Shown piece after piece: positions 1,598 to 32,748 of a DNA stretch of 64,000 bases (the first letter of the stretch is position 1; each line of letters starts with the position of its first letter). Made by a program: the position numbers and the translations under genes. Under the pieces are notes generated by a model. That model saw only the letters and a list, made by a program, of their open reading frames with translations, had not been told where the DNA came from and ran no database searches. The DNA lies in the NCBI GenBank assembly GCA_002269645.1, contig NIVC01000216.1:56806-120805 (forward strand), written 5' to 3'. Source of the stretch: Macrostomum lignano. Taxonomy: Eukaryota.

Positions 1598-1850
1598 GGG
1601 TAAACGGCGAGAGTAACAATTAATGCAATCAGATAGACAAGAGCTTCGCCAGCTTATCAGACAAAAGTACTACAAATTTATGGAACAAGAGTTTCTATTC
1701 AGGGTAAACAGCGGGAGCAACTATGACTGCAATTAGATAGTCAAGTGCTTCGGCATATAAAGAGTATCAGAAAAGAATTTTTTGATGTCAGGGACAAATT
1801 TTTTCCAGGGATACTCGCTATCAAATCACTTACGGCTGGGTAAACAGCGC
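1598..1850 (+). repeat. Three tandem diverged copies of the 28S rRNA R2-target segment (two full, one partial)
   Basis: Compared with the conserved eukaryotic 28S 64-mer GGGTAAACGGCGGGAGTAACTATGACTCTCTTAAGGTAGCCAAATGCCTCGTCATCTAATTAGT: 1598-1661 matches 45/64 and 1702-1765 matches 49/64, both ungapped. 1838-1849 matches 11/12 at the 5' end only. Confidence 0.8.
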
Positions 1851-2439
1851 ATACAGTTCACTGACTACGCCTGTATCTAGAAAATGATTAATTGATCGAA
1901 AAAACCAAAAAAGATGCTCCTAAGAGATGCACAAACTACACCAACATATATTTAAAGACAGTTATAAACACGAATTAGACACGAAAAATTAGCTCGTAAA
2001 TAAACAAATGCAGCTACTCGGCAGTAGCATGAACAGATTTTTTCACTACTAATTTCGACAATTACTAGAAAAAATATGTGAACACGCATAAATGTGAAAT
2101 TAGTGCAATCGTGTTTCTTTTTTAGTTGGCAAAGGAAGCTTAATGCACAAAGGTTACAAATGCTTATTTACTGTGTTGCTGATTGTAGCAAAACAAAAAG
2201 TTAAAATGCAACTCGGAAATTATATGAAAGTAATAGTAAAAAGATATTTGTCCTTACCGAACATCCAAAAAGTAATTCATTTTCGACGTACAATGACACA
2301 AAATACAAAAAGGAAAATTCCATACTGTATATAAAAATCAGGACTAATTAGCGACAAAACAACTCGCAACAAAAACAATATATAGCTGTTTATGAATCAA
2401 CGAATAAAATTTGACAGTATTTTCCATTTCGGTTTGTCT

Positions 2440-3230
2440 TAGATCTAGCCGCCGCCACCACTATCAATACTGACTAGCTTTTGATCTAGCCGCCGCTATC
2501 ATTATCAATACTGGCTAGTCTTTGATCTAGCCACCCCTATCATTATCAATCTGGCTAGTCTTTGATCTAGCCGCCGCTATCATTATCAATACTGGCTAGT
2601 CTTTGATCTAGCCGCCGCTATCATTATCAATACTGGCTAGTCTTTGATCTAGCCACCCCTATCATTATCAATCTGGCTAGTCTTTGATCTAGCCGCCGCT
2701 ATCATTATCAATACTGGCTAGTCTTTGATCTAGCCACCCCTATCATTATCAATCTGGCTAGTCTTTGATCTAGCCGCCGCTATCATTATCAATACTGGCT
2801 AGTCTTTGATCTAGCCACCCCTATCATTATCAATCTGGCTAGTCTTTGATCTAGCCGCCGCTATCATTATCAAAACTGGCTAGTCTTTGATCTAGCCGCC
2901 GCCATCGCTATCAATACTAGCTAGTATTTGATCTAGCCGCCGCTATCACTATCAATACTGGCTAGTCTTTGATCTAGCCGCCCCTATCATTATCAATCTG
3001 GCTAGTCTTTGATCTAGCCGCTGCTGTCACTATCAATAGTGGCTAGTCCTTGATCTAGCCGCCGCTATCACTATCAATACTGGCTAGTCTTTGATCTAGC
3101 CGCTGCTGTCACTATCAAAACTGGCTAGTCTTTGATCTAGCCGCCCCTTTTATTATCACTACTGGCTAGTCTTTGATCTAGCCGCCCCTATAATTATCAA
3201 TACTGGCTAGTCTTTGATCTAGCCACTACT
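2440..3230. repeat. ~39-40 bp minisatellite (GATCTAGCCGCCGCTATCATTATCAATACTGGCTAGTCTTT)
   Basis: About 19-20 visible tandem copies. Confidence 0.95.
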
Positions 3231-3353
3231 ACTACCATAAAATCTGCCTTTAATCTCACGGCTGCTACCATTAACTCACAAAGGGACAATCCGCGATACA
3301 ATTTAAAGTACATTCAAAACTGCCAGAGTTTATAAACTCCATGCAACTCAGAG

Positions 3354-5435
3354 CTAATCAAACATGATTAAACTGCTACTATCGCTGACATTAACGTTCC
3401 CTTCTCGGTCGGTGAGGTTGGAATTGACGGACTGGTCCATTGCGTGTTGCTCCTCAGACTCCTCAGGCTGCTGGCTGCAGCTGCTCAGCCTATCCAGGCA
3501 GTCAGTCAATCGGCCGAATTCGGCTAAATCCGCATAGTATCGTCGAATCGTTTCATCATGCGCAGATCTCAGTTTGCGCACAACAACGCGCGCCTGCCTG
3601 CCCGAGCCGTCGGCGTCGGCAATGGCAAACTTGCCAGAAATATCATTAACTTGTTGAGCAAAATTTTTAGCCTCAGTTTTGGCGCCAAATTGAACTTCAT
3701 AGGGCTCAGACTCCGCACTGCGCAGGTAGGCTACCACATTCTTCAGGTAAGGATTATTGTCCGGCGGCTCCGCAATCCACGGCTGATTCCAGCGAAATTC
3801 CGGCTCACCAACGCGGCACGAATTTGCTGCCTCAAGCTGGCGCCGGCGCAGCTCCAAGAGTTTGCGGCAGGCCCGACTGTCGGCCTGAAAGCCGTTGAGC
3901 AGCACCCGCTCGGCCAGGTCGCGCAGCAGATTGGAATAGGCCAGCTGGAGATGCTGGCGCTCCTCGTCGGTTGTGCCCGACCGCGACACCTGCTGGCCTA
4001 GCGAGTCGATTAGGCGATGAAATCGTTGCCAAAGCTCGTCGGATTGGACGGCGTGAAGGAAATCCACGAGTTCGATCAGATTCTCATTAGCGAATGAGCG
4101 CTGGCTAAGGTAGGACCATTTTTCCTGGGACATTGTCAGGCGGAACTCGCCTCGGCGATAACGGCTCTCCGCTGACTGCAGCAGGCTGTCCACCAGGGTG
4201 CAAAGCAGACGCCGGCCACCGCCTGACATTTGAGTCGCATGCGGATGGCAAGTGTTAGGGCATATTTGGCTAAGGCATTTCTGGTTCCGCCTCCTTACAT
4301 TCCTTTTACATACCTTATGACTTCAGTCTTCATACTTAGCTCGCTCCCCATCTCTGCCTTCTGTTCTCACGTGTTTCCTTGTTTCTCTTCTCATGCCTCC
4401 CCACTTCCTTCCCGTGTCTCTATTCTCTATAGTATCTCTCCCTCTCTCGCTTTCCACCTCTCCCCTCTCTTGCCGTCTCTCCCCTCTCCTTCCCATCTCT
4501 CCACTCTTCCTGTCTCTCCCCTATCTCGCTTCACATCTCTCCCATCTCTTGCCATCTCTCCCCTCTCCTTCCCATCACTCCACTCTCTCGCTTCCCACCT
4601 CTCCCCTCTTCCTTTCTCTCCCCCATCTCGCTTCTCATCTCTCCCATCACTTGCCATTGCTCCCCTCTCCTTCCCATCTCTCCACTCTCTTGCTTCCCAC
4701 CTCTCCCCTCTCCTTCCCATCTCTCCCCTCTCTTGCCATCTTTCCCCTCTCTTGCCATCTCTCCCCTCTCTTGCCATCTTTCCCCTCTGCTTCCCATATC
4801 TCCCCTCTCTTGCCATCTTTCCCTTCTGCTTCCCATATCTACCCTCTTTCCCCTCTCCTCCCCATCTCTTCCCTCTCTCCCCATCTCTTCCCTCTCCTTC
4901 CCATCTCTCCCCTCTCCTTCCATATCATTCCCATGTCTCTCGCCTCTTCCCGTTCTCAGCTTACTTGACTGCCGGGACCGGCCAGCCAGAAACGATCGCA
5001 AAGTTTTAGCAATAAAACTAGCAGAGTTAGCCACGCTCATGTTAACAAAGTCCACCAGCCTGCGACAGAGGCCCTCGTGCTCGCAGGCCAGCAGACACTG
5101 CAGGCCGAATCGGACAGTGGGATTGTCCCCCCTGCCCGCATTGTTGTTGCCATCGCGGGCGGCCACTGCGCCGCTAGTGGCCGATTCAAGCGCTCGAATC
5201 AGCAGCACGGCCAGCGGCTGCGGCAGCGCGGTGGAACTGCAGGCGCTGACGGCAGCCTCCAGACTGGGGCACCATCTGAGGGTGATCGTTGGCTGAGCTG
5301 CTCAAGAGGCATTCGTGTGTGCGACATTGTAGCAATAGGAGTGACAGACAGACAGACACTAAGACAGACACTAAGACAGACAGACAGGCACTAAGACAGA
5401 CAGTAAGACAGACAGACAGACAGACAGACAGAGAA

Positions 5436-5528
<93 letters not shown>

Positions 5529-5531
5529 GAA

Positions 5532-5578
<47 letters not shown>

Positions 5579-7256: not shown

Positions 7257-7293
<37 letters not shown>

Positions 7294-10200
7294 ATAATAA
7301 TAATAGTAGTAGTAGTAGTAGTAGTGTTAGTAGTAGTAGTGTTAGTAGTGTTGGTAGTAGTAGTAGTAGTAGTGGTAGCAGTAGTAGTAGTAGTAGTAGT
7401 AATAATAATAATAGTAGTAGTAGTAGTAGTAGTGTTAGTAGTGGTAGCAGTAGTAGTAGTAGTAGTAATAATAGTAGTAGTAGTAGTAGTAGTAGTAGTG
7501 TTAGTAGAGGTAGTAGTAGTAGTAGTAGTAGTGTTAGTAGAGGTAGTAGTAGTGGTAGCAGTAGTAGTAGTAGTGGTAGCAGTAGTAGTGGTAGCAGTAG
7601 TAGCAGTAGTAGTAATAGTAGTAGTAGTAGTAGTAATGGTAGTAGTAGTAGTAGCAGCAGCAGTTGTAGTAGCAGTAGTAGTGGTAGCAGTAGCAGTAGT
7701 AGCAGTAGTAGTAGTAGTAGTAGTAGTAGTAGTTGTAGCAGTAGTAGTAGTAGTAGTAGTTGTTGTTGTTGTAGCAGCAGTAGTAGTAGTAGTAGTAGTA
7801 CCTGCTTCTTACCTGGCCATCTGCTCAACCGTATAGCGACCTCGCAGAGCCCAAGCAATCCGAACAGCCGGAAAATCCGGTTCAGCTAGGTGCTTCAACA
7901 ATTCAGCAATATCCTCTCGAGGAGACGGAGTTCCCGTTTGCTGTTGTTGCTGTTGCTGCTGCTGCTGCGTTGGCGAACTGCGGTAGCCGTCTGCGATGAC
8001 AGCAAACTGTAACAGCAGCTGACAGCCGGAGGTCATTCGCTCGAGTTTGAGCTGCAGAATAAGAAGGGAATTTAATTAACTGAACATTTTGCTACCTTTA
8101 CATTTCTGACTGTCTTAGTAGTGCTGCTGTCCAGGTGTCTAAATATGTGTCTACATGTTTGTAAGTACCTACAAGCCTCTCTGTTTTATTGTCTGCCTGG
8201 TGTCTCTCTTAATGTCTGTCTTGGTGTCTGCATTGGTGTCTGTCTTGGTGTCTGCATTGGTGTCTGTCTTGGTGTCTGCATTGGTGTCTGTCTTGGTGTC
8301 TGCATTGGTGTCTGTCTTGGTGTCTGTCTTGGTGTCTGCCTTGGTGTCTGTCTTGGTGTCTGTCTTGGTGTCTGTCTTAGAATCTGTCTTGGTGTCTGCA
8401 TTGGTGTCTGTCTTGGTGTCTGCATTGGTGTCTGTCTTGGTGTCTGCATTGGTGTCTGCATTGGTGTCTGTCTTGGTGTCTGCCTTGGTGTCTGCATTGG
8501 TGTCTGTCTTGGTGTCTGTCTTAGCATCTGTCTTGGTGTCTGCATTGGTGTCTGTCTTGGTGTCTGTCTTGGTGTCTGCATTGGTGTCTGTCTTGGTGTC
8601 TGCATTGGTGTCTGTCTTGGTGTCTGTCTTAGTGTCTGTCTTAGCATCTGTCTTGGTGTCTGCATTGGTGTCTGTCTTGGGGTCTGCATTGGTGTCTGTC
8701 TTGGTGTCTGCATTGGTGTCTGTCTTGGTGTCTGCATTGGTGTCTGTCTTGGTGTCTGTCTTAGCATCTGTCTTGGTGTCTGCATTGGTGTCTGTCTTGG
8801 TGTCTGCATTGGTGTCTGTCTTGGTGTCTGTCTTAATGTCTGCATTGGTGTCTGTCTTGGTGTCTGTCTTGGTGTCTGCATTGGTGTCTGTCTTGGTGTC
8901 TGCATTGGTGTCTGTCTTGGTGTCTGCATTGGTGTCTGTCTTGGTGTCTGTCTTGGTGTCTGTCTTGGTGTCTGCATTGGTGTCTGTCTTGGTGTCTGCA
9001 TTGGTGTCTGTCTTGGTGTCTGTCTTAATGTCTGCATTGGTGTCTGTCTTGGTGTCTGTCTTGGTGTCTGCATTGGTGTCTGTCTTGGTGTCTGTCTTAG
9101 CATCTGTCTTGGTGTCTGCATTGGTGTCTGTCTTGGTGTCTGTCTTGGTGTCTGCATTGGTGTCTGTCTTGGTGTCTGCATTGGTGTCTGTCTTGGTGTC
9201 TGTCTTGGTGTCTGTCTTAGCATCTGTCTTGGTGTCTGCATTGGTGTCTGTCTTGGGGTCTGCATTGGTGTCTGTCTTGGTGTCTGCATTGGTGTCTGTC
9301 TTGGTGTCTGCATTGGTGTCTGTCTTGGTGTCTGTCTTAGCATCTGTCTTGGTGTCTGCATTGGTGTCTGTCTTGGTGTCTGTCTTGGCGTCTGTCTTGG
9401 TATCTGCATTGGTGTCTGTCTTAATGTCTGTCCTGGTGTCTGTCTTGGTGTCTGCATTGGTGTCTGTCTTGGTGTCTGTCTTAGCATCTGTCTTGGTGTC
9501 TGCATTGGTGTCTGTCTTGGTGTCTGCATTGGTATCTGCATTGGTGTCTGCATTGGTGTCTGTCTTAATGTCTGTCCTGGTGTCTGTCTTAGCATCTGTC
9601 TTGGTGTCTGCATTGGTGTCTGCATTGGTGTCTGTCTTGGTGTCTGTCTTAATGTCTGTCCTGGTGTCTGTCTTGGTATCTGCATTGGTGTCTGTCTTAA
9701 TGTCTGTCCTGGTGTCTGTCTTAGGATCTGTCTTGGTGTCTGCATTGGTGTCTGTCTTGGTGTCTGTCTTGGTGTCTGCATTGGTGTCTGTCTTAGCATC
9801 TGTCTTGGTGTCTGCATTGGTGTCTGTCTTGGTGTCTGCCTTGGTGTCTGTCTTAATGTCTGGCCTGGTGTCTGTCTTGGTGTCTCTTAATTTGTCTTGA
9901 TATCGGTTTTAGTGACGCTTTCAATGCCTACCCTAGTGTTTTGTCTTGATGTCTGTACTAATGCAAGTCTTGGTGTTTGTCTCAATGCCTGTCTTACTGT
10001 CTTAGCGCCAGCCCGTCTGCCACAGTTCACTCACATCAGCGCCAACTCCAGTTTGATCGCAGGGCAGGCAAACGTAGCTGCAATTGAAAGTCTCAGTAGC
10101 TGCACCAACAGACGATTCAGACGAATCATCCGCCCGAGGCTGCTCGCGGCAGTCGACAGACAGATCGGCCTGAGCGGACACCGCGGCCGCATCGTCTCCC

Positions 10201-12337: not shown

Positions 12338-15300
12338 CTACAACAGACAGGCCAGCGCGTGCCTATAAGCCTGGCACCGATGGCTGGCAGACACCAGCAC
12401 CAGGTCCCGATCGACGCACAGATTCAATTGATCGTGCTCGCGCCATCGAAACTTCGAACCCAATTGTAAACTGGCCAATAACTGGTGACTTTTACTATCG
12501 AACAGGTGTACGCTGCCTTCAAAGCACTCTCTGCCGGGATGGTACTGTCCGCACAGAATAGCCAGCACGCCTAATTCGTCTTCGTAGTCAACACAATGAA
12601 CCGAGCGAGGATTAAAAAAGAATCCATCGTTGTGGGCCTCCCGATGCCGCTGTCGGACCAGCCGGCCAGATCGAGTGGCAGCTTCGCCAGACCGAATCTG
12701 CTGCTCCATCTCGGCCTCGAATTGAAATTCGGTTACTAAGCAATCTTCTGTAGCTTTCAATACGCTGACAGAGTGCAGCTGAGTCAGTATGATCCTGCCA
12801 GACTCGTCTGGGTGAAATGCAACTAGGCGATTAGTGTCGGAATCGGCGTGCTCTGGAACGGTCAGTTCGAGTCGCTTGGTAGCATTTGGGCCAGTTTTAA
12901 CTAGTGGCTCAATCAAGAACAGGCCGGTATTGCCGTTGCTTCTGCTGCTACTATTGGCTGCTTTTAGTAGCAAATTATTATTACTATAGCTACAAGCAGG
13001 CGGCGAATACAGTACATGCCAAGGCGATTTTCCAAATTCGGCTTCGCTCTGATCGCAGTCCAGCTCAAACAGGCAGGGAGGCAGGCGGCTCACAAGATAG
13101 GGAGTCACTCTGAGCTGGCCATTGTCTAATTCAAATGGCGCCAAGCCATCCAGCACAGTAGCCTCGGACAGGATCTGGTCCATATTGTACACGCGCACAG
13201 ACCTGCCCGAACAGTGCACTATTAGTGCGCCTTGAACGGCCCGAATGTTTTTAGTGCCGCGAGGCGCCGCCGACGCTAAGACGCTGATTAAAGTGCCGAA
13301 GGCCAGAGCCGGAACGTCTAGGATAAGAAAGCTTTTAGTGATGCTTTGCTGCCGTTGCTGCTGCTGCTGAGAGCATAGCGTGGAGTCCAGCACAACAGAA
13401 TAGCCGGCATCGTACCAGTCTAGGGCCATGAATCTGCAAATTTATAAGCTTTATTCATTTTCAAATGCAGAAAACTATCATTCTAAAATAAATTAGCAAG
13501 TTCTCCTTCTAAGCTTTCCTTAATATTAAATCCTCACCCCTTAAAATCACTTTCAAAGACATCACCCCCTTTTATGAAAATCCCCTTTATGTTTCCTTTT
13601 CAAAGAGATATTCCATTAAGCTTCTCTTTCATAGAAATATCCCTCTTAAGCTTCCCCTTTCATAGAAATTTTCCCCTTAAGCTTCCTCTTTCATAGAAAT
13701 CCTCCTTCTTTGCGCTTTCCCTTCCATAGAAATGTCCCATTAAGCTTTCCCTTTCATAGAAAATCCTATTAAGCTTTCCCTTTCATGGAAAAATGCTATT
13801 AAGCTTCCCCTTTCATAGAAAAATGCTATTAAGCTTCCCCTTTCATAGAAAAATCCTATTAAGCTTCCCCTTTCATAGAAAAATCCTATTAAGCTTCCCC
13901 TTTCATAGAAAAATCCTATTAAGCTTCCCCTTTCATAGAAAAATCCTATTAAGCTTCCCCTTTCATAGAAAAATCCTATTAAGCTTCCCCTTTCATAGAA
14001 AAATCCTATTAAGCTTCCCCTTTCATAGAAAAATCCTATTAAGCTTCCCCTTTCATAGAAAAATCCTATTAAGCTTCCCCTTTCATAGAAAAATCCTATT
14101 AAGCTTCCCCTTTCATAGAAAAATCCTATTAAGCTTCCCCTTTCATAGAAAAATCCTATTAAGCTTCCCCTTTCATAGAAAAATCCTATTAAGCTTCCCC
14201 TTTCATAGAAAAATCCTATTAAGCTTCCCCTTTCATAGAAAAATCCTATTAAGCTTCCCCTTTCATAGAAAAATCCTATTAAGCTTCCCCTTTCATAGAA
14301 AAATCCTATTAAGCTTCCCCTTTCATAGAAAAATCCTATTAAGCTTCCCCTTTCATAGAAAAATCCTATTAAGCTTCCCCTTTCATAGAAAAATCCTATT
14401 AAGCTTCCCCTTTCATAGAAAAATCCTATTAAGCTTCCCCTTTCATAGAAAAATCCTATTAAGCTTCCCCTTTCATAGAAAAATCCTATTAAGCTTCCCC
14501 TTTCATAGAAAAATCCTATTAAGCTTCCCCTTTCATAGAAAAATCCTATTAAGCTTCCCCTTTCATAGAAAAATCCTATTAAGCTTCCCCTTTCATAGAA
14601 AAATCCTATTAAGCTTCCCCTTTCATAGAAAAATCCTATTAAGCTTCCCCTTTCATAGAAAAATCCTATTAAGCTTCCCCTTTCATAGAAAAATCCTATT
14701 AAGCTTCCCCTTTCATAGAAAAATCCTATTAAGCTTCCCCTTTCATAGAAAAATCCTATTAAGCTTCCCCTTTCATAGAAAAATCCTATTAAGCTTCCCC
14801 TTTCATAGAAAAATCCTATTAAGCTTTCCCTTTCATAGAAAATCCTATTAAGCTTCCCCTTTCATAGAAAAATCCTATTAAGCTTTCCCTTTCATAGAAA
14901 TCCTCCCCTTGCGCTTCCCCGTCCATAGAAATGTCCCATTAAGCTTCCCCTTTCATAGAAAAATCCCATTAAGCTTCCCCTTTCATAGAAATATCCTATT
15001 AAGCTTCCCCTTTCATAGAAATCCTCCCCTTGCGCTTCCCCTTCCATAGAAATGTCCCATTAAGCTTCCCCTTTCAAAGAAATATCCCATTAAACTTCCC
15101 CTTTCCTAGAAATATCCCATTAAGCTTTCCCTTTCATCCCACCCTTCAGCCTCCCCTTTCTCAGAAATTCCACTTTTCAGACTCCCCTTTCATATAAATC
15201 CCACCCCTCAGCCTCTCATTCAATAGAAATCTCCCCCAAAGATTCCCCTTAATAGGAATATGCCATATGCCATGGACAAACAACAGTATCAAGCTGCACT

Positions 15301-15997: not shown

Positions 15998-16123
15998 AAA
16001 CAAAAACTTTATAGCATGTCTCTGCTTTTAATAGAATGGAAACAAAAACTTTATAGCATGTCTCTGCTTTTAATAGAATGGAAACAAAAACTTTCTAGCG
16101 TGTCTCTGCTTTTAATAGAATGA
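15998..16123. repeat. 42-bp direct repeat x3
   Basis: AAACAAAAACTTTATAGCATGTCTCTGCTTTTAATAGAATGG in tandem. Confidence 0.9.
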
Positions 16124-16982
16124 CTCTTTTAACTTTCAACATTTTAACTTTTTGGGCAAAATTCTCATAAAACACATAATTATTTATTATTCTAACTTTG
16201 CGTCTTCAAATGTTTGATTTCTGTCTTATATAGGTTTTTCTAAGGTTTTATAAGAGTACACAGTCACAGAAAGTATATAAATGGTCCATAGATTTCCCCA
16301 AATAATCTTTTTGACTATGGGATATAACCAAATATTCTACTAATAGCTACATATTTCAATAACCAATCAATGAAATAAGGTTATGTAAGGTTATATAAGC
16401 CTATCTATCAATAATAACCATATGGCCAATCATATAATATATATTAGAACAAAAAATGAAGGCTTAAACTAATTGTTTACTACTATGCTAGATTTCAGTA
16501 AAAAATGGCTTAATTTGTATCAAAGTTAACCAATTTATGTACATATATTATACTTATATACCCTAAGAAATAACATTAAACAAACTATTAAATTATATTT
16601 ATAAGAATATATACTTAACCTACATGTAATTAAAATATCAAATTTTCATATATAGTATAAAGTATATCTAATACTAATAACAATTAGTTTAGCTCTATAG
16701 GAGCTTTTAGAGTTCTAATTTATAATAATTTATGATCATTATAGATCAAATAACTTAAACATAATGCTGAAACAGATAATGCATTATACATACCAAAATG
16801 AATACCACTTTTGACCCTTTTGCAGTATACAGCTTAAGTGTGCCAGATGCCTACACTAATTAATACACACAGGACTAGGGGAAATATTGTAGAGAACAGT
16901 TAATCATATCCTAATGCACTGCTTAAAGTAACATCTAAAAAAATCAATTTAAACTTGCAATCTATTGTTAGAATAAGTCATA

Positions 16983-17750
16983 ATGAGTCATCTATTTTTA
17001 GAAATCTATTTTAGAATGAGTCATATACAAACAGAAGTGACTCAGAGCCCTATGTAGGACCAACATTTATTTGATCAAGGAACTGGTTCCCAGGAGTTGT
17101 TTTTGCTTAATTCCATATATGGTAATGACCAAACATTCATGACCCCTTAAACATGTGTGACCTAAATAAATAACTGATTTTACTTGTAAACCAGTTTTTT
17201 ACCAAAATTTTATATTAAATAAAAGCAAAAATCTGAGTAAAAAATTCAGACTTGGAGCAATCTTAAGGAAGACTTTGGAAGACATTAACAAAGAAGACCT
17301 ATCTCTGAGAGACAAAATCTAGACTGATTGGTAAGCATTTGCCAGATTTAGTTCTTTGTTATAGCACTAATAAGTTGATTAATTGAGTTTACAAGAGCCA
17401 CTTATTGTTGACACATTTGAAAAAGGCCTCCATGTTTCTAGAGGATTTATTGATTTGATTTGAGTTACAAAGATGTAACAAAAAAGACACCCTTAGGAAG
17501 ACCTATTACAGATACTTAGAGAATTCAATTGTTCATTAGGGTGCACATTCTATTATTAACTCCAAGCTTGAGGACTGTCGAGAATTCTGATTTGTTTTCA
17601 TTTTGGTCAACCCACAAATAAAGTTAAGGACTTCAAGAGACAGCAGCTACTCATTGAAACTGGCTGCCATCATTGCTCAACAAGCTAGCTAGCCTTAAAA
17701 CCAACAAGACTCCAAAAACTACCAACTATAAAAGGATCCACTGCAGTAAG
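16983..17750 (+). pseudogene. Decayed gag-like reading frame
   Basis: Stop-riddled frame with ...LIVDTFEKGL... (FxxGL gag-like) followed by CFHFGQPTNKVKDF, which has CX2CX4HX4C spacing but only the first Cys retained. Confidence 0.35.
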
Positions 17751-18450
17751 AGTTATTTGATTTTGCAATTTGCATATACCAAGGCACTTGTTCCCCAGTG
17801 TTTAGAAGTAGGAGTTTGAAGTGACTGATCACCACTCTTAAACTTTTTAATATCCTTTGGTAAACTTGAGATAAGTCAAGCCTTAGCTCCACCTCTCCTT
17901 TACTTGCTGCTATGCTACACTTCTTTATGCTATATTGCACCTGATTATTGCACATTTCTTTGGGGTTTGGCTTTTTTTAGCTTATTATAAGATATTGAAT
18001 ATTATTATATAAAATTGTTAAGTAATGATACATTGAATATATGCAAACTAATTTATCAATAAATCAAAATTATTTACATATTTGTTTATATAGTGAGCCA
18101 ATGCTCATTTAGGTTTGTTTTTTTATTGCATGTTTTATAATATTTAAATGACTAATTAAAGCATAGGGACTTCTAACATTAGTTACCTTATAAATGCCTT
18201 GTTTTCTCTTCAATATCTATCAAATGGACAAGTATTTTTCAATTGCCATTGTATAATGGCTTTCCAATTTGTAGAAGGAAAGTATGGTTCATAGCTACTA
18301 TTGTATAATAAGCATCTATATAAAATTAATAAACTAAGAGTATCTTGTATGCTGCTATACTATTTGTAGTGCCAAAACACAATTAGAAGGTGGAATTATA
18401 ACAATAAGTGGATAGCACAACTATAGTCAGAGACTGATTAAAGAATAAAT

Positions 18451-19191
18451 ATGATGGCTTTGAAGTATAGGCTCTATAGTTTTAATATCAATCAACCATC
18501 AAAGCAGCTACACACATTGTTTGATGAAGTATCTAGTAGATATCTAGCTAAAATTTTGATTGGCTTTCTACAGGTAGAATAGTGCATATGGCACTCTAGA
18601 GGCTCTATGCAACCAGGATTTCTAACATCAATTGATGAAGCCATTGAGTTGCTTGAAACAGAAGGCCACTTGCAGTACTATGGAATAAAGATGCCAAGAA
18701 AGTATACTAAGGCAGTATCTAGGCAACTAGCAATTTTTGCTCGTCTAGATTTGCTAGTTAGATTGGAAAGAAAGGGGCAAGTCTTCATTGATAGAACATT
18801 CTATGTAGTTTTGTAACCTTTTTATCAACTTGTCACCACTGGTATAACCAAACAAGGTTGCTTTTTTCTGACCTTTTCCTACCTCTTCCTGATAATAGGC
18901 AAGTCAAAGGCAATTTATCATTTGGTATAAACAAAGCTTTAGCAGCTATGCCCATTGTTTCAGCTACTAGAAATTATGGTCAACTTTAAGATTATATTGC
19001 GCAATTCATTTTCTAAGACCTTTGCAGAAGCTAACTATATTTGGTTGACAATTTCACTTCTCTTAGGCCATCTTGACAAAGCTTAAAAAGCTAGGCCTTT
19101 AGGCTAACATGCTGTGCATTACTGATATCTAGCATTATACCCACCTACTTATGTGCTTACCATTGTTACTAGTTGTGAGCTATATAGATAG
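18451..19191 (+). pseudogene. Decayed tyrosine-recombinase/integrase-like reading frame
   Basis: A single frame of ~245 codons with in-frame stops and no frameshift. Contains FARLDLLVRL, TKQG, ILRNSFSKTFAEA and ISLLLGH, resembling the R...K...HxLRHSF...LLGH motifs of XerCD/phage integrases. Confidence 0.4.
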
Positions 19192-20298
19192 GCTATAATA
19201 ATCTTTTTGGCCATATAAATGTACTTATTTGTTTATATACCTAACAGTGTCTTATTGGGGTCTCTATTTAATTGATGGCTATAGATAATTGGGCATAACC
19301 CCTAGTTTCTTACATTCAACTATTTTTGATGATAAAAAACAACATAATAGACTAAAACAAGTTAGTCAATAGCAGTCAAAAGTCAAGAGGCCATTTTAAA
19401 TTGCCTCTGGTTTGATAGATCAAAAGTTTCAAAATAATCAAAAGTTTCATAGATGGGACTTAAGAGATAGAGTTTTAAGTTCTAACTAACCAACTCCAAC
19501 AAAGTTCTTCCAACAAAGGAGTTGGCCTGGTTGTAAGATGGAGAGCCAGTTCAATTGGACTAAGCATTAGGTTGTCTGGCCATAGGCCATGTCATTTCTG
19601 AAATTAAAAAAATTACATTAAAATAATTTAATGCAAGAAACTAGGATTATACCAGTTGATTTAAAATAAACATATAAAAAATATTTTTTAAAAACCTTAA
19701 ACATTAATTGATCAAACCTTAAGCTTTTAATTATTATATAATATAAATTTTACATATCTATATGCCAATAGATATTATAATAAATGTTTATTATAAGGTA
19801 TAATAATATAGCAAGTTATTTTTACTTTTTAATTTAATAAGGGTTTACAAACTTAAAACTTTATTGGGTGGCCAGAATTGATAACAACATCACACTTAAA
19901 ATTATAGCTATGAGATGTATATATCCTACCACATAGTATAGGTCTAACTAATAAGCTACATAGCTTGTATGTAGTACATAGAATAGGAATAGACCATCTT
20001 TCTACTTTTCTAATATTCTTCAACATATAATGTTGCTAATTAGCAATAGAAACAAAATGTATATTGATTATTGTGTCAATGATAAAAGAGAAATCAAGGA
20101 TTCAAGTAAAGTCCTAGTTAAATTCCTAGTTAAATTCATTCCTAGTTCATTCCTAGTTAAATCATCTTGAAATCCAATCTAGCAATTAAAATTAAGTCAA
20201 GAACTCAAAAGTTATTGATATTTGTATTTTATAGAATTGAGAAACATTTTAAGATTTCTATTTCTAATATAGAATAGAGGCTATAGTAGAAATTATCT

Positions 20299-20676
20299 GG
20301 GTTTTTAAAGGTTAGAAATCCAGTTGCCAGCTGGCCCTTAGGGCTCAAAATCCAGTTGCTAATGGCTATTTTTGGTTGCCCATTGGCAACTAGCCAAATT
20401 CTCAAGGATGGATATTTCTAAGGCTATGTTTGAAAAGCAGAAATTTGTTCTTTCAACTCTAAGATTGCTATCTATGCTTCAAATAATAACAAACTAATAA
20501 TTCCATCATATTGATTTATATGGCACTTTTATTACATTTACAAAATCATTTTTTTAAAATTGGCAAACTGGCACAAGGAAAATAAAGTTGCCAGATTAGC
20601 CTTTGATGCCAAAAATCCAATTGCCAATGAGATTTTCAAGGGGCCAAAAAGCCCTGTATGGCCTAAAAAACCCAAG
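20299..20676. mobile_element. Degenerate MITE-like element, CpG-decayed
   Basis: Imperfect inverted termini CTGGGTTTTTAAAGG / CCTAAAAAACCCAAG and internal AAATCCAGTTGCC repeats. No TSD established. Confidence 0.45.
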
Positions 20677-20774
20677 AGTAAAATAAATGCTTCATATATC
20701 AAAAGTTTAAAGATAGGCCTACACTTCAATCTTAGGGCCTATAATGCATTATAAATGAGAAATATATGCTTTAG

Positions 20775-21068
20775 CATACATGCGCAACCTCCAAAATTTG
20801 GTCGGCCATGCAACTTAGTTTTAACAAAAATGCGACGTAGTTTTTGGCTAAAATGCGACTTACATGTAAAAACCTGAAGCAAAATTAATGCAACTTTGGG
20901 TAAACAGCAGGGGTAACTATGACTGTCTTATTAAGCCAAAATGCCTCGTCAGCTACTTAGTACTACTACTTGGGTGTTTTTTTGAGTGGGCATTTTTGCG
21001 ACTTCCTTGGTTGGCCGCCAAATCAGTCGGCCAGATCGGCCAACTTGGCCCACTGTTGCGCATGTATG
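20775..21068. mobile_element. 294-bp MITE (8-bp TSD, hAT/P-like) carrying a 28S R2-site-like segment
   Basis: Perfect 14-bp TIRs CATACATGCGCAAC / GTTGCGCATGTATG and TSD TGCTTTAG at 20767-20774 and 21069-21076. The internal 20898-20961 matches the 28S 64-mer at 51/64 ungapped, with gapped similarity extending back to ~20835. Confidence 0.92.
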
Positions 21069-21377
21069 TGCTTTAGGTGCACTGCATTGAAAATAGCACT
21101 CTTACTATAAGCCTAAGAAAGGTATTTGTTATGGCTATTAGTCATTTTGGCAATAAGATATTTTGGCAATAAATACTTTAATAATAAGACATTTAGAAGC
21201 TCATAACATAACATTCATTTTAGCAACAATTTTAGGCCATTTTGGCAAATTTTCCAAATATATCAACTTAAAAAAATAAAGAAACAGCTGCTATTTAAAA
21301 TTAAATGGACTGATTAATTCTATTTTTTATTTCAATGACTTTTATTCAATTTTAAATCAATAAGTTTTCAACTAGGC

Positions 21378-21785
21378 ACATTTTGCGGATGGTGGGGTGT
21401 ACGCCGGAAAATTCCAGCATACACTTGATTGCTATGGCGTACACCAGCTTACATTTCTTGGCTATGTACAGTGTGGCATACAGTGTGGTATATGGCGACT
21501 GGTGTAGAAATTAATATAAAGAATTTTTTTGTGCTTTTTCTGTGTTAAGTTATTTCAAAAACCATTTTTCTGCTACTATTTTCTCATTTACTAATCATTT
21601 TAATTACCAGAATTGTCACGACAATTGTCATGTCATTATCAATTTTTTGTAGTTTAAATTTAAATTTAAATATTTATTGATTTTTTACCATTTTTAAGTT
21701 GGCGTACATTTAAAATCTATTGGCATACAATTGAAAATTCAATAAAAATGTGTCTAGCATACACAGAAAACCTTCCGCAATATGG
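21378..21785. mobile_element. Degenerate MITE-like element
   Basis: Imperfect ~29-bp inverted termini (CACATTTTGCGGATGGTGGGGTGTACGCC / AGCATACACAGAAAACCTTCCGCAATATGG). Confidence 0.45.
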
Positions 21786-24758
21786 AAATAGGCCTATTTT
21801 AACAAAGTGTAGGCTATATATACATAAGTTAACATGATTAACTTTTATTTTTAATTTGCTATTCTAATTATACTTTATAGTAATATATTATTATCCTTGT
21901 CACCTAATTTATACTAATTATAGTTTGTTTTACCCATCAAATAATTAAATACAAATAGAAATTGTTTGTTATATCAAGACATATTCTTAAATTTATATTG
22001 TTAGGCTTTTGCCAAAATTTCTACCTCTTTTGGACTATTGGCAATATAAAAACTATTGTCACAAAAAATTCATTTGTCTCAAAATTGTAGCCAAAGTCAG
22101 TGTCTATCACTAAAATGCCTAGTTACCAAAGTCAAAGTGACTAATAGCCTTTGCTGCGAGTGCTACTTGTAATTTCAAGATATCTAGATTATGAAACTGG
22201 GCTATCTTCAAGTTTTGTTTGTTTAATTCCAACACCCACCCCCACCACCCTTGAATAGAGGGCGAAATAATTCCAGAAATAATTAAATGAACGAAACTTG
22301 AAGATTGCCTGAAACTGAAATGTTGACATTATCAAATTTTAACCTTATGACTAGATCAGTAATGTGTATCACTTATTATAAAATGGAAGTGGCTACTATT
22401 TGTTTTCTACATTTTGAAACTTTGACCTTGTTAATTTTTTTAAAGTGGTTACTAACTATTTGAGTTTTTGATATTGTGAAATTTTGAGATTGTGAACCTC
22501 CCCTATCTCTAAATCAACTTTATAATTCTTCTTTCTCATCTATTTGTAAGATAGGTCCAAATAAGCTAGCAAATTCCAAATTGTTCTTTAAAGAAAGCAG
22601 AGCCTTTGAATAGGCGATAGGCCTAGGCTTAGCTGAAAGTTTAAGCAATGTTCTATAACTGGCAGTGCCTGGCAGTTGGCACTACCTAGCTAGCCTTACT
22701 TATACAGTTATACAGCTAACTTATACAGTTACTTATCCAGCTAGGCCTAGTGCTTCCTAATACTAGGCCTAATCGTAGACTACTAGTATACTGGATCCTA
22801 CTAGTATACTAGCTCACCTCAAACCTTTGCAGCTTTGCTTAGTTCCCTTTTGAAGTGTAATAGGCCTAGTTGCTACAATATCAACCAAACCCAATTAAAG
22901 TTTGAAAATAATTGACAGCTGTCAATTTTATCTTTCCTTAATTACAGCTGACTATAAAAACTGCAATCATAAAAATTGAATTTTATAAATTGAATAACTC
23001 CGAAGATGAATAATCAGGAAAATAGGTCATTTTGCTATTTTTTCTAAGAAATACAAGTAGGCCTACCAAATAAAGTCTAATTCTCAGAAAATTTTGCCCT
23101 AGAATAGCCTTAAATGCGTTAGTATGTCTGTTTAATTTATATTTATACTTATGTATATAAAGTTTAACATATTTTGTTTTTCTAAGATTTCACTGCATTC
23201 TCGAATACGAGTGGAGCTTCGAAGCGAAGCGATGCCAGCTTGCAAGAAAGGATTTGATTAGTCATTTCAAGTGGTCCCCAGCAGCCAAGTCGAGTAGTAA
23301 GTGGCAGTTCCCACTCGCTGGGTGGGGATACGAGGATATATATTACCGTTTTCGGAAATTTCCTAATTGGTCCATTCATTTTATGATAAGTTAATTGTCT
23401 TAATTATTTTTTGCATTGCATTTATCTGATCTAGAATTTGTGACACGGATTATTGTAAATTCAAACTTTACCGGAATTTCCGGAATTTTACGTGGCGCCT
23501 ACGCCTAGCTATGGTTATTACCAGCCGTGCCAATTCCGACTGCCAATTCCGAAGGTTTTTTTTCGCCCGATACTGATCAACCGCCGTAGGCCTTGGCCTG
23601 GCTCCCAAATTCAGGCCGACTTCGGCCTTTGCTTCTTGTATGCAATGCCATTTCGAACTCTCATTCTCAAGTCCTAGCAAAAGTATGTGCATTTAGAAGT
23701 ATTACTTTTTATTTATGGCATGCGTTTCTGCATGACTTCATCTGGGAATAATGGTAAATGTAATTGAATTTATTATAGACTTACCAACAGCTTCATACCT
23801 GTACATTCATATACATGCCACAGCTTCCTGTAGCTCGGCGCCCTCTCCTTCGCGCTGCAGCTGTGAACTGATTGAAACTGATCAGTCTCGTACATCTACA
23901 GCTATAGACTACATGTGTACATGTACATGTTAAATTACTCAAGACTGTTTTTTCTAGGACTGCTATATACGTCACTACGTGTACATGTAGATGATTCAGT
24001 CAGGTTTTTTGTACTCCCATAGTTTGCATTGGCCAAAACGGATCAAAAAGGTAAAATTACGAACAGTAAAATTTAACTGTGTGTTAACGGGAAAGTTACA
24101 CACTTTACTTGCATTATATTTTTCATGCTTGCATTATATTGGCATGTTAAATAGACATAGCACGATCTAGCCAGTAAATCTTACATGTAGCCGCGAAGTG
24201 GCAGCCCTGTCAATAGGGTGGAGTGGGGTTTCCAGGTTTGAAGAAAAATATTACAATTAAAACTTTAATTCAACAAATGAAGAAAAAACGAACTTACAAT
24301 ATAAAACAACATTTTTGGAAAAAGTTAAAATCCTAAAATTTTAAAGTACCGACAATTAAACAGTTTATACACTTCACGTTTGCTGTACACCTTGCATTAT
24401 TTACATTATTTAGATACACTGCGATATTTCAATATTTCAATAATATACTTTACCCGCCCGGCTGCTTCGGTCATTTTTGCAAAGCTTTGGCCAACAAATA
24501 TCAAGAAGCACTGCACAGCTTGTTGGATTAAACTGGTTCGGAATGACGATAACAATAACATAAAATATTGCGATAGCGCTGAGTCAACAAGAACGATTAA
24601 AGATTAAATCAATAAGTCCCTGAAGCTGGCTCAACACTTGGTGAAGTCAAAACAGACCAGTCAACATGCTATCATTTTTCGCAAGAAATGCTTTGCAAAC
24701 ATCAACAAGTCAATAGAGCAGGAAAGCTATTGTGTATAAGACGCAGCATTTACATGTA

Positions 24759-24836: not shown

Positions 24837-24910
24837 GCAATTTGGATTTAGAATTGGAGCAATTCTAAAAAATTTCTCAGCAACCAATAATCCCTTGTTC
24901 TGTCCACATA

Positions 24911-25210
24911 GGGGCTGTAGCGCCCAGTGGTTGGAGCGTCGAACTCCCGACTTGAAAGGTCGGGGGTTCGATTCTCGACCTACACTCGGAACAATTTGCG
25001 TCCTTGAGCAAGACACTTAACTCTGCATTGCTTCAGTTCACCCAGCTGTAAAATAGGTGCCAGCATTATAGCTGGTGTAATTGAGGGTGTGTGTGGCGAC
25101 CCCCCCCCCCAAACAGCCGTACGCAGCCTTCAGATGCACTGCGCAATAGCTGCGGCTAAGCTGTCGGTTGCACCCATTAGGGTAGGTGTTATCAATTATT
25201 ATCATTGTCC
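24911..25210 (+). mobile_element. tRNA-derived SINE with CORE-like central domain
   Basis: tRNA-like head with an A box (TAGCGCCCAGTGG) and a B box (GGTTCGATTC). GTCCTTGAGCAAGACACTTAAC...TTCAGTTCACCCAGCTGTAAAATAGGT resembles the CORE-SINE domain. Short ATT-rich tail. Confidence 0.8.
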
Positions 25211-26039: not shown

Positions 26040-26556
26040 AACTTGGCGCTACCCCTCTCGTTATTGCGTGAGTTTGCACTACCGCTACCCTCTCCAAAGG
26101 AATTGGCGCTACCCTCTCTAAAGGAATTGGCGCTACCCTCTCCAAAAGAATAGCGCTACCCTCTCCAAAGGAATTGGCGCTACCCTCTCCAAAGGAATTG
26201 GCGCTACCCTCTCCAAAGGAATTGGCGCTACCCTCTCCAAAGGAATTGGCGCTACCCTCTCCAAAGGAATTGGCGCTATACCCTATCCAAAGGAATTGGC
26301 GCTATACCCTATCCAAAGGAATTGGCGCTATACCCTATCCAAAGGAATTGGCGCTACCCTCTCCAAAGGAATTGGCGCTATACCCTATCCAAAGGAATTG
26401 GCGCTATACCCTATCCAAAGGAATTGGCGCTATACCCTATCCAAAGGAATTGGCGCTACCCTCTCCAAAGGAATTGGCGCTACCCTCTCCAAAGGAATTG
26501 GCGCTACCCTCTCCAAAAGAACTGGCGCTATCCTCTCCAAAAGAATTGGCGCTGTC
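26040..26556. repeat. 20/22-bp minisatellite (CCCTCTCCAAAGGAATTGGCGCTA)
   Basis: Direct tandem repeat. Confidence 0.95.
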
Positions 26557-26854
26557 CCTCGGACTTTTTAACTCGCTTTCGCACCTGAGCCAAAAATATT
26601 GATAAGAAATGTTTTGCCTGTTCAAAACCGTGCTCTTGAATTCTAATCAGAAAATGGTGTTATGCAGCTTGGCCTGCCCTTGCCCTTCCTGCGTTCACGC
26701 GAAGATATTACGGCCGCTTCTTCCATGCAGTTTTATATATAGCTTGAAAATGAAAAGTAGCCACCCTGCCAAGCGTCCAGGGACCGCGCCCATTCCTAGG
26801 GTTTAGATATTTGTTCAATTCAGAGTTCGTTAAAACAAAAGCAAACATAGCGAA

Positions 26855-29800: not shown

Positions 29801-32748
29801 AGGGCACAATTTGAATAGTTGTCAAAATCATCTGAAGAATATACTCGTAAAGTCAGTATTTGCTGACTATCTTGCTACTGCCAAAAATTTCAGCGCACTT
29901 TAATTCGATATAAATAACCGTGAATCGAATGTTAATAATATTAATACTTATACTACCGCCCAAAGCCAGGCGGTGAGCTAAAAATATCGACAAATGTTTA
30001 TGAACATCTTAATTGCCAACGGACTGAAAGTCACCAGTCGGACAGACAAATTTAAACTTTAAATTCTGTTATAGAAGTTATAGAATAATAGCAATTATCG
30101 ATTCGAGTTAAGAATAATTGGATTCTCTGTTTTACATCTATAAATTGTAGAAATACGGCTGGAGTAACTATACATGTGCAATTAGTATAAAATACCTCGT
30201 CATCTAGTTAGACTGACTTAGACCCTAGCGGCTTACCTCAACTCCCTTTCCTTCAAGTTATGGGCCCCCAAACCGGGGATTGAAAGAATCGGGGGCGCCG
30301 AGATGACCTCAAACTGACCTTGACCTCAACCTTGTCCGCTCGGGGCCAGTGGGCGGCGCCACAACAAGCATAAGCTGTGTTTGCAGATTGAATTTATTAT
30401 TAATATCGTCTGACATCTTTGGCATAATTCCATGCAGTCTAATGCTCTATAGCCTCAAGTGTAATTGCCTACTTGCACGTTGGACTGAGTATTTTCTGAC
30501 GAAATTGTATGCTGTCCAATGCTGATATGTATTAATACATGCATTGTCTGTCCCTAACTCTTGCCTCTAGACCTGGCCAAGGTCAGCCAATTTTCATAGT
30601 TCTTACCTCCCTATATCCTTATCTCCTCTCTCCTTATCTCCCCTCCCTCCTTATCTCCTCTCTCTCCTTATCTCCTCTCTCTCCTTATCTCTCCTCTCTC
30701 CTTATCTCCCCTCTCATTATCTCCCCTCTCTCCTTATCTCCTCTCTCTCCTTATCTCCCCTCTTTCCTTATCTCTCCTCTCTCCTTATCTCCTCTCTCTC
30801 TTCTTATCTCCCCTCTCTCCTTATCTCCCCTCTCATTATCTCCCCTCTCTCCTTATCTCCTCTCTCTCCTTATCTCCCCTCTTTCCTTATCTCTCCTCTC
30901 TCCTTATCTCCTCTCTCTCTTTATCTCTCCTCTCTCCTTATCTCCCCTCTCATTATCTCCCCTCTCTCCTTATCTCCTCTCTCTCCTTATCTCCCCTCTT
31001 TCCTTATCTCTCCTCTCTCCTTATCTCCTCTCTCTCTTCTTATCTCCCCTCTCTCCTTATCTCCCCTCTCATTATCTCCCCTCTCTCCTTATCTCCTCTC
31101 TCTCCTTATCTCCCCTCTTTCCTTATCTCTCCTCTCTCCTTATCTCCTCTCTCTCTTTATCTCTCCTCTCTCCTTATCTCCCCTCTCATTATCTCCCCTC
31201 TCTCCTTATCTCCTCTCTCTCCTTATCTCCCCTCTTTCCTTATCTCTCCTCTCTCCTTATCTCCTCTCTCTCTTCTTATCTCCCCTCTCTCCTTATCTCC
31301 CCTCTCATTATCTCCCCTCTCTCCTTATCTCCTCTCTCTCCTTATCTCTCCTCTCTCCTTATCTACCCTCTTCTTATCTCCCCTCTCTTCTTATCTCCCC
31401 TCTCTCCTTATCTCCCCTCTCATTATCTCCCCTCTCTCCTTATCTCCTCTCTCTCCTTATCTCCCCTCTTTCCTTATCTCTCCTCTCTCCTTATCTCCTC
31501 TCTCTCTTTATCTCTCCTCTCTCCTTATCTCCCCTCTCATTATCTCCCCTCTCTCCTTATCTCCTCTCTCTCCTTATCTCCCCTCTTTCCTTATCTCTCC
31601 TCTCTCCTTATCTCCTCTCTCTCTTCTTATCTCCCCTCTCTCCTTATCTCCCCTCTCATTATCTCCCCTCTCTCCTTATCTCCTCTCTCTCCTTATCTCC
31701 CCTCTTTCCTTATCTCTCCTCTCTCCTTATCTCCTCTCTCTCTTTATCTCTCCTCTCTCCTTATCTCCCCTCTCATTATCTCCCCTCTCTCCTTATCTCC
31801 TCTCTCTCCTTATCTCCCCTCTTTCCTTATCTCTCCTCTCTCCTTATCTCCTCTCTCTCTTCTTATCTCCCCTCTCTCCTTATCTCCCCTCTCATTATCT
31901 CCCCTCTCTCCTTATCTCCTCTCTCTCCTTATCTCTCCTCTTTCCTTATCTCTCCTCTCTCCTTATCTCCTCTCTCTCTTTATCTCTCCTCTCTCCTTAT
32001 CTCCCCTCTCATTATCTCCCCTCTCTCCTTATCTCCTCTCTCTCCTTATCTCCCCTCTTTCCTTATCTCTCCTCTCTCCTTATCTCCTCTCTCTCTTTAT
32101 CTCTCCTCTCTCCTTATCTCCCCTCTCTGCCTCGCCCACTGGCTCTGTCTCCTTCACTTTTCTTCTCTTAATCTATCTATCTAATTATTCTTTCTGCGTT
32201 TTCAAATTATAATTGAATCCACAATGATACAAAATCACAAAGAATAAAAAACTAGTTGTAACTCACTCATAACTACGAGCGTACACTGAGTAAAATCACC
32301 TGTCTAACCCTCCGAATAACCGCGAATCCGTGCCGAGTAGAGCGCAGCTCAGCCGTCACAGCGAACAAAGTCGCCGCAGCTGCTAGGCACTTTTGACATC
32401 GTTCGGCTACGGCCGGACTGCTCTCACTAAAAGCGAATTTTGTCGTGGTAAACGGAATGAGTAAACGGAATGAGTAATAATATGTGCGTGTAAATGGTCA
32501 GAAGCTTCGTCATCTAATTAGTAAACTCACACTCTGCCGCCACTGTTTTCGAGCACTTCGACCATCTGAGCGGCCTGCTCAGTGCTGAGTCTGGGCCCCT
32601 CCAGCGCCAATCGGAAGCACTGTCGAACAATGAGCTGCGAATCCTGCTCAATGTTGTGCACCCGTCGAGTACTACTAGCCCGAGGAAAGTAGGGCCCCGA
32701 GTCGGCGTCGACCGTACCATCCGCTGCTACATCGCCGCCACTAATCAT
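26855..32748 (-). CDS. Divergent Bcl-2 family protein (BH4-BH3-BH1-BH2)
   Basis: Exons 32748-32531 (IEQDSQLIVRQCFRLAL, BH4-like), 32426-32300 (ATLFAVTAELRSTR, BH3-like) and 28542-28306 (BH1 region plus LDYFRKTASAWVVRAGGW, BH2, BOK-like) join in frame through GTGAGT/TTTTAG and GTGATT/CTCAG sites. The terminal exon 27067-26855 is in phase but uncertain, and the N-terminus is uncertain. Confidence 0.72.
27340..28215. repeat. 33-bp minisatellite (GAGAATCGCGCAAGGTAAGATTGGGCACAAGAT)
   Basis: Direct tandem repeat, interrupted by a MITE. Confidence 0.93.
27394..27739. mobile_element. 346-bp foldback MITE, 9-bp TSD (Mutator-like)
   Basis: Long imperfect TIRs (~75 bp) and TSD GTAAGAATG at 27385-27393 and 27740-27748. 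Confidence 0.85.
28600..28807. mobile_element. Short MITE-like inverted-repeat element
   Basis: GGGGGCATCCCAAGCCGGAAAAAGCACAACTCCGAA versus TTCGGAGTTGTGATTTTTCGGTTCATGATGGCGACCCC. TSD not resolved. Confidence 0.5.
28830..29742. repeat. 33/34-bp minisatellite (GAAGCTGTTGAGGTCAAATAAAGACTATTCGA)
   Basis: Direct tandem repeat, followed by a 49-bp direct repeat x2 at 29743-29848. Confidence 0.95.
30149..30212 (+). repeat. Diverged copy of the 28S rRNA R2-target segment
   Basis: 41/64 ungapped. ACGGCTGGAGTAACTAT and AAATACCTCGTCATCTAGTTAG lie at the exact 28S spacing. Confidence 0.7.
30605..32128. repeat. CT-rich satellite (CTCTCTCCTTATCTC variants) in the Bcl-2-like intron
   Basis: 1.5 kb pyrimidine-rich tandem array. 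Confidence 0.97.
32447..32522 (+). repeat. Diverged copy of the 28S rRNA R2-target segment inside a 104-nt intron
   Basis: 32459-32522 matches 43/64 ungapped, including a perfect TCGTCATCTAATTAGT. A 13-bp tandem duplication GTAAACGGAATGA lies at 32448-32473. Confidence 0.72.

Follow-up and report, generated by a model that had tools for sequence, protein, structure and literature searches.

Here, we describe a group of short sequences resembling part of the 28S ribosomal RNA (rRNA) in a 64,000-nucleotide stretch of the Macrostomum lignano nuclear genome (assembly GCA_002269645.1, contig NIVC01000216.1, positions 56,806 to 120,805 of the forward strand), to which we refer as the window. Three genes were mapped in its first 33 kb, namely a 1117-amino-acid (aa) gene, a DCAF17-like gene, and a Bax-like gene, all three on the minus strand. 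The open reading frame (ORF) at minus-strand positions 12338-13429 matches an annotated M. lignano DCAF17-like protein with 100% identity. A homolog search with the Bax-like ORF returned one protein, found only in UniRef, and a search with a cadherin-like ORF of the window gave no match. M. lignano has been described as a recent polyploid (PMC5704211, PMC10733133), and two further contigs of the same assembly are colinear with the window at 94-99% identity: NIVC01001003.1, labelled here L001 and L002, and NIVC01001370.1, labelled L003 and L004. The sampled DNA consisted of the ~64-kb window and three homeologous stretches. The window has 57 ORFs that reach 120 aa or more, and 20 of these were searched for protein domains with Pfam.

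The window was compared to a canonical eukaryotic 28S 64-mer, GGGTAAACGGCGGGAGTAACTATGACTCTCTTAAGGTAGCCAAATGCCTCGTCATCTAATTAGT, from which the 28S of M. lignano itself may differ. An ungapped, unseeded scan of both strands of the whole window, at a threshold of at least 32/64, found exactly five 28S-like copies, all on the plus strand. They are named below by their first position and listed together with a truncated unit and the intron that contains the last of them.

1598-1661, plus strand: 28S-like core, copy 1, 45/64 identical to 28S; first tandem unit, 1 nt after an assembly gap
1702-1765, plus strand: 28S-like core, copy 2, 49/64; second tandem unit
1838-1849, plus strand: truncated start of a third tandem unit, GGGTAAACAGCG
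20898-20961, plus strand: 28S-like core, copy 3, 51/64
30149-30212, plus strand: 28S-like core, copy 4, 41/64
32459-32522, plus strand: 28S-like core, copy 5, 43/64
32427-32530, minus strand: first intron of the Bax-like gene, 104 nt, GTGAGT...TTTTAG, from exons placed by tblastn and splice sites read from the sequence

The five copies are far above chance. Across 50 control windows, produced by shuffling in blocks of 500 nt, the best match had a mean of 32.4 and reached at most 35/64, a level that even the weakest copy, at 41/64, exceeds. An initial annotation of this DNA had reported the same five copies with the same scores, had described them as antisense to the neighboring genes, and had cautioned that the weaker ones could fail a shuffled control; the unseeded scan and the minus-strand genes mapped in 1-33 kb bear out the first two statements. 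Of the partial copy that it had placed at 1838, a plus-strand match is indeed present, limited to the 12 nt listed above. A search with nhmmer, using a 300-nt 28S segment, returned the same five sites. No other rRNA segment was found in the window by Rfam or by nhmmer with the 28S segment, and local alignment against shuffled sequence gave no significant extension of 28S likeness beyond the 64-mer for any copy. A further ~120 nt of 28S homology that nhmmer placed 3' of copy 30149 was unsupported by the same local alignment and was set aside. Since copies 1598 and 1702 are tandem duplicates, the five copies represent four independent events; a shared plus-strand orientation then has P ~1/8 and is not significant alone.

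The copies share bases that distinguish them from 28S. Position 28 of the 64-mer is G (C in 28S) and position 36 is A (G in 28S) in all five, and T stands at position 40 in three of the four independent lineages. TGCAAT[T/C]AG is present in three copies, and the 9-mer TGCAATTAG is common to 1702 and 30149 with an offset of 2 nt, where 1598 has TGCAATCAG. GCTTCG is common to 1598, 1702, and 32459, and AAAAT[G/A]CCTCG to 20898 and 30149. Shared non-ribosomal characters of this kind had been noticed in the initial annotation. All five copies cover the same short piece of the several-kilobase 28S gene and preserve the total length of the 64-mer. The four independent copies stop at ...TTAGT (reference positions 131-134), with a 5' extent that varies from 37-47 to 73. 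The derived bases fixed in all copies therefore point to descent from one already-altered progenitor rather than from independent ribosomal DNA (rDNA) debris, provided that the 28S of M. lignano is canonical at positions 28 and 36.

Likeness to 28S is unevenly distributed within the copies. At positions 25-40, 46/80 bases of the five unseeded copies mismatch 28S, compared to 45/240 across the two flanks (Fisher P = 2e-10). When the tandem duplicate is left out, the counts become 38/64 in the center and 34/192 in the flanks (Fisher P ~1e-9). Mismatches in a sliding 16-nt window peak at positions 25-40, and this peak was never reproduced in 10,000 trials of column permutation (P < 1e-4). A degraded center had been proposed together with the possibility that seeding on the flanks had produced it. 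Because the contrast is seen in copies found without seeding, it is genuine and not a seeding artefact. The 10-mer TTAAGGTAGC, previously said to be missing from every copy, is kept in none of the five, and no copy has an intact TTAAGG/TAGC cut site with continuous 28S context. The two flanks are matched alike (5' 99/120, 3' 96/120), contrary to the earlier claim that a block ~22-34 nt upstream of the R2 nick is the best kept, and they still differ from 28S at 13-29% of positions. Compared to CTATGACTCTCTTAAGGTAGCCAA in 28S, the center of the progenitor was roughly CTATGACTGCAATTAGATAGTCAA, which amounts to ~7 substitutions in 13 nt with the length unchanged. The rewritten 13 nt lie exactly over the site of R2, Pokey, and I-PpoI, and this localized rewriting is the sole feature of the copies that goes beyond ordinary decay.

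Copy 20898 is carried by a recently inserted MITE, or miniature inverted-repeat transposable element, with an 8-bp target-site duplication (TSD) and a precise empty site in a homeologous contig. The parts of the element, besides the core already listed, are as follows.

20775-21068, plus strand: MITE-like non-autonomous DNA transposon, 294 bp, with the 28S-like core mid-element; delimited by the break in the homeolog alignment and the empty site
20767-20774, no strand: left TSD, 8 bp, TGCTTTAG
20775-20788, plus strand: left terminal inverted repeat (TIR), 14 bp, CATACATGCGCAAC
21055-21068, minus strand: right TIR, complementary to the left one at 14/14 positions
21069-21076, no strand: right TSD, 8 bp, TGCTTTAG

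The blastn alignment of the window to L001 breaks at window 20775-21064, and the empty site in NIVC01001003.1 (L001) reads ...GAGAAATATA-TGCTTTAG-GTGCACTG..., with TGCTTTAG present there as a single copy. The DNA around the MITE is 98% identical between the window and NIVC01001003.1, and the insertion is therefore recent. Deletion by microhomology was considered as a source of the empty site and is excluded, since the inverted and direct repeats adjoin each other at either end of the element. The element is non-coding and contains subterminal TGCGAC repeats. At 13/64 positions its core departs from 28S. An insertion this young leaves time for far fewer changes, and the core must therefore have come down from a source element instead of being taken from rDNA when the MITE inserted. 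Likeness to 28S may reach ~25-30 nt further 5' (to ~20868-20875), an extension that depends on the aligner and is not significant alone. No transposase domain was found among the 20 large ORFs scanned with Pfam. Sequence resembling the terminal repeat was also seen inside copy 30149 and was rejected, as such matches occur in the window at a chance count.

The right end of the MITE, GTTGCGCATGTATG (21055-21068), matches 28S GACGCGCATGAATG, the bases right after the core, at 11/14 positions, with a post hoc P of 0.015 anywhere in the 300-nt 28S segment and of 2e-4 at that boundary; the arms of the MITE are otherwise not 28S-like. This match could be due to chance, or could hint at an earlier continuous stretch of 28S that comprised both the core and the end of the transposon, and we give it little weight. 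The MITE landed inside an AT-rich island at 16000-22300, with ~30% GC and without long ORFs. The third homeolog is without the whole neighborhood of the MITE and has 276 bp (L004 5291-5567) in place of window 20497-22315, which is therefore probably a nest of old insertions.

The other four copies are older. Copies 1598 and 1702, together with the truncated unit at 1838, are a local tandem duplication that comprises slightly more than two units of ~104-136 nt. Upstream of the first unit, L001 has sequence unrelated to the unit, and therefore no large satellite is hidden in the assembly gap. L001 contains both 1598 and 1702, each with a single substitution, and 30149 and 32459 are identical in L002 and L003. 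Every homeologous contig that covers one of the four sites also has the copy; the four copies lie in introns or intergenic DNA and pre-date the split of these contigs. Between homeologs, the cores differ by 2 substitutions in 128 nt against a background of ~6%, and by 0 in 128 nt against ~2%; there is no convincing excess conservation of the copies. No target duplications were found around any of the four.

Two of the older copies lie in introns of the minus-strand Bax-like gene. Copy 30149 is in the 3.7-kb second intron, between two minisatellites. In a tblastn search with the Bax-like protein, exon 1 fell at 32969-32530 and exon 2 at 32425-32282; of the 104 nt of the first intron between them, ~76 are the antisense 28S-like element of copy 32459. 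At its 5' end, this copy has a 13-nt internal tandem duplication (GTAAACGGAATGA twice, window 32447-32472) that is found in all three homeologs. Introners are transposon-generated introns in which the intron consists of the element and one copy of its target duplication, with many nearly identical introns in other genes. No duplication across the splice junctions of the 104-nt intron was found, and a literature search gave nothing linking introners to Macrostomum; the idea that the element made this intron is unsupported.

Other features of the window concern its repeats and assembly. Window 1-1452 is a 98.9% duplicate of 3585-5050, including part of the last exon of the 1117-aa gene, and the two are joined via a gap of 144 N (1453-1596), the gap next to copy 1598. 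Such an arrangement reflects either the mis-joining of a scaffold or haplotig or a segmental duplication of ~3.6 kb. The density of minisatellites, with units of 17-44 nt, is exceptionally high (for example at 2436-3224, 8213-9885, 13615-15137, 30609-32128, 36985-38191, 38696-40124, and 40626-41767). Their copy numbers vary among the three homeologous contigs, and many of the long ORFs of the window are minisatellites read in frame. At 40578-40642 on the minus strand, Rfam gives a weak match to the archaeal C/D box family sR4 (26.8 bits, E = 0.057, well short of the gathering score). The match sits on the edge of a 28-nt minisatellite and is likely to be spurious.

We consider it most likely, with a confidence somewhat better than even, that these copies are an ordinary mobile repeat: a transposon-borne family derived from 28S, with the core a passenger in non-autonomous DNA transposons. 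The mobile-repeat reading is supported directly for copy 20898 and by inference for the family. It would make of the copies an old, non-coding, dispersed repeat family of M. lignano, with a core of ~64-95 nt taken from helices 68-71 of 28S rDNA. The family would descend from one progenitor in which the central ~13 nt, the R2/Pokey/I-PpoI site, had already been rewritten, and would not have arisen by repeated capture of rDNA. The core would be moved by cut-and-paste, through a transposase encoded elsewhere, and the 8-bp target duplication would fit hAT- or P-like elements; local tandem duplication would have amplified the core as well. The four older copies may likewise have arrived by transposition, the 28S module would probably have no function of its own, and the rewritten center would represent a single early event. 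One possible cause of this event is that an rDNA copy struck at the hot-spot was repaired with errors, or kept a residue there, before the fragment was captured. Alternatively, carrier lineages that had lost a site open to rDNA-specific elements may have survived better. The decoy idea discussed below is a third possible cause. An undescribed rDNA-derived mobile repeat with a common non-rDNA ancestor was one of two readings offered in the initial annotation, and both the shared derived bases and the position of copy 20898 within an element with TIRs, TSDs, and an empty site are in its favor.

Several observations weigh against the transposon-borne family. Each copy is about as near to 28S as to any other copy, and pairwise identity between copies is 53-67%, although the same distances would result from star-like decay of a progenitor whose flanks were 28S-like. 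Transposon ends are found around only one of the five copies, no convincing inverted repeats being present around the other four. A second pair of the terminal repeats of the MITE was not found at up to 2 mismatches in the window, L001, L002, or L004, a weak negative given so tiny a homeologous sample. Searches of the whole MITE against the window with blastn and nhmmer recovered only the core, and no flanks shared with the other copies; at the pairwise identities observed, flank homology would be undetectable anyway. Finally, ordinary decay does not give ~7 changes in 13 nt at a fixed length.

The common 3' stop in four independent copies, combined with a variable 5' extent, would also be expected if the copies were the 3'-terminal part of a non-long-terminal-repeat (non-LTR) retrotransposon, or of a non-autonomous derivative, with a 28S-derived 3' untranslated region (UTR); most copies would then be 5'-truncated, and the MITE would merely have picked one up. 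Precedents are documented in R2 elements with 28S-derived 3' UTRs and in flatworm R2 families that lose target specificity (PMC5035012). We nevertheless regard this origin as unlikely: no poly(A) or microsatellite tail is common to the copies, the four older ones are without TSDs, three copies have the same 5' start, no reverse-transcriptase or R2-type domain was found among the 20 large ORFs scanned, and the one datable insertion bears the hallmarks of a DNA transposon. It is quite improbable that the copies are independent rDNA debris, that is, unrelated 28S fragments used as break filler or left as pseudogene scraps and decaying separately. The initial annotation had taken copies nearer to 28S than to one another as a sign of such debris, and numerically the copies come close to this, each being at least as similar to 28S as to the others, with flanks outside the core that do not align between copies. 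The positions fixed in all five (G28 and A36) and the shared non-28S 9-mers argue against independent capture, as do the recurrence of the same 64-nt piece with the same boundaries in every copy, in a window with no other rRNA segment, and a core in the MITE that is far older than the MITE insertion.

The second reading in the initial annotation was that the copies are decoy or docking sites that an R2-like endonuclease binds but does not cut. Such sites would be functional, uncuttable 28S mimics that hold an R2-like or other rDNA-specific endonuclease through their flanks. They would be maintained either by the host or by selection on transposon lineages, in which carriers of intact sites would be invaded and inactivated. 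The degraded block is centered on the R2 nick and is statistically real in unseeded copies, the total length is kept in all five, and R2 elements occur in flatworms (PMC5035012). Apart from the position of the block, nothing was found in favor of this R2 decoy idea, which is without support and which we judge very unlikely. There is no R2-like gene among the 20 large ORFs scanned, the two flanks are preserved to a similar degree with nothing special about the known upstream binding block, the flanks have diverged from 28S, the copies are not conserved in excess between homeologs, and a single early rewriting inherited by all copies explains most of the pattern. A related reading, which we hold to be highly improbable, is a transposon-borne mimic of the R2/Pokey target, in which the flanks are kept for binding an rDNA-specific endonuclease or integrase and the cut site has been selected away, so that the copies serve as decoys or escape invasion. 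If true, it would imply thousands of uncuttable decoys, or escape of the carriers, and an undescribed form of competition or immunity between mobile elements. Least probable of all, and in our view extremely so, is a small RNA, either a minus-strand, intron-derived guide antisense to 28S that resembles a small nucleolar RNA (snoRNA), or a plus-strand RNA polymerase III mimic of helices 68-71. Copy 32459 does fill a short intron antisense to 28S, its minus-strand RNA has 16 nt of perfect 28S complementarity followed by CUGA, and T-runs occur within 25 nt after three copies. However, the nucleotide to be guided is mismatched, the 104-nt intron lacks both a C box and a terminal D box, and terminal C/D or H/ACA boxes were likewise not found. 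The copies have no Rfam match at the gathering threshold or at E <= 10, including to the large subunit (LSU) model. The consensus fold of four copies with their flanks has an energy of -1.5 kcal/mol and practically no covariation. Pairing in helix 69 is broken, and neither the boxes nor the T-runs are common to all copies.

The transposon-borne family can be compared to several known systems. In its 294-bp non-coding size, TIRs, subterminal repeats, TSD, and empty site, the carrier of copy 20898 is like other MITEs with 8-bp TSDs (hAT, P), from which it differs in that the internal module is 28S rDNA and that no autonomous partner or second copy is present in the sampled stretches. Elements of the hAT group have an 8-bp TSD of the form nTnnnnAn and terminal repeats starting YARNG. 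The carrier TIR starts CATAC, and the TSD TGCTTTAG has the 8-bp length and A at position 7, but G at position 2.

A pattern scan of metagenomes gave 74 loci, nearly all of them chance matches in coding sequence. Three kinds of 28S-like match (L010/L049, L050, and L039) were considered and do not belong to the M. lignano family. L010 (Ga0209628_10096938, 280-760), to which L049 is identical, is a decayed R2 5' junction: the upstream 28S flank, itself diverged, runs as far as CTTAAG, after which come C2H2 zinc-finger and Myb-like motifs with stop codons. L050 (Ga0114957_1007516, 650-1250, minus strand) consists of ~10 tandem units of ~52 nt from the 5' half of the 28S segment (GGGTAAACGGCGGGAGTAACTATGACTGCCTTAATACG...), ending at the TTAA/R2 site; the units are bracketed by a direct repeat and adjoin (TTAGG)n, the arthropod-type telomeric repeat. 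Like the M. lignano copies, L010/L049 and L050 hold diverged sequence of the same 28S segment outside intact rDNA, and L050 also shows short tandem amplification. In contrast, L010 runs into R2-like zinc-finger and Myb motifs and L050 into an unrelated repeat, and neither can be aligned with the M. lignano family beyond the 28S part.

The SINE28 elements of mammals, which are short interspersed nuclear elements (SINEs), derive from the 3' end of 28S. They are likewise a dispersed family from 28S rRNA (Longo et al. 2015, cited in PMC10946416). SINE28 is a retroposon, and elements of that kind have a 3' tail, flanking target duplications, and an internal RNA polymerase III promoter. The M. lignano copies come from helices 68-71 in the core of 28S, the one that can be dated was mobilized as a DNA transposon, and they show no shared tail, no signature of retroposition, and no evident A/B boxes. 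Pokey and mPok of Daphnia, which belong to piggyBac and insert at TTAA in this 28S segment, are described as a DNA transposon and MITE with internal rDNA-derived sequence and are tied to the same 28S region (PMC10946416, PMC3849761). In these accounts the internal repeats of Pokey come from the intergenic spacer (IGS), its duplications are TTAA, and 28S is its target; in M. lignano, 28S is the cargo and the TSD is 8 bp. Diverged 28S sequence around the R2 site is also found in R2 elements with a 28S-like 3' UTR and in the flatworm R2NS (Kojima, Seto and Fujiwara 2016, PMC5035012). In the elements described there, the 28S-like part lies only upstream of the site and is attached to an R2 ORF, while the M. 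lignano copies have both sides around a rewritten center and, in the ORFs scanned, no adjacent R2 or reverse-transcriptase ORF.

A literature search found no description of such a family in Macrostomum. Copies of this kind can pass for rDNA fragments, R2 targets, or nucleolar-organizer signals in fluorescence in situ hybridization (FISH) and read-mapping studies of Macrostomum karyotype evolution, and the rewritten R2/Pokey/I-PpoI site could preserve a trace of the way in which rDNA copies leave the array after damage at this hot-spot. The rDNA-derived modules in transposable elements tabulated in a 2024 review (PMC10946416) are mostly 5S promoters in SINEs and terminal-repeat retrotransposons in miniature (TRIMs), together with the IGS repeats of Pokey and one 28S-derived case, SINE28. 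A transposable element with an rDNA-derived module is thus a known phenomenon, and the M. lignano family looks like a further case. If the family proves abundant, it would be a second 28S-derived mobile family beside the SINE28 of that review; none before it would be borne by a DNA transposon, and none would stem from the functional core of 28S.

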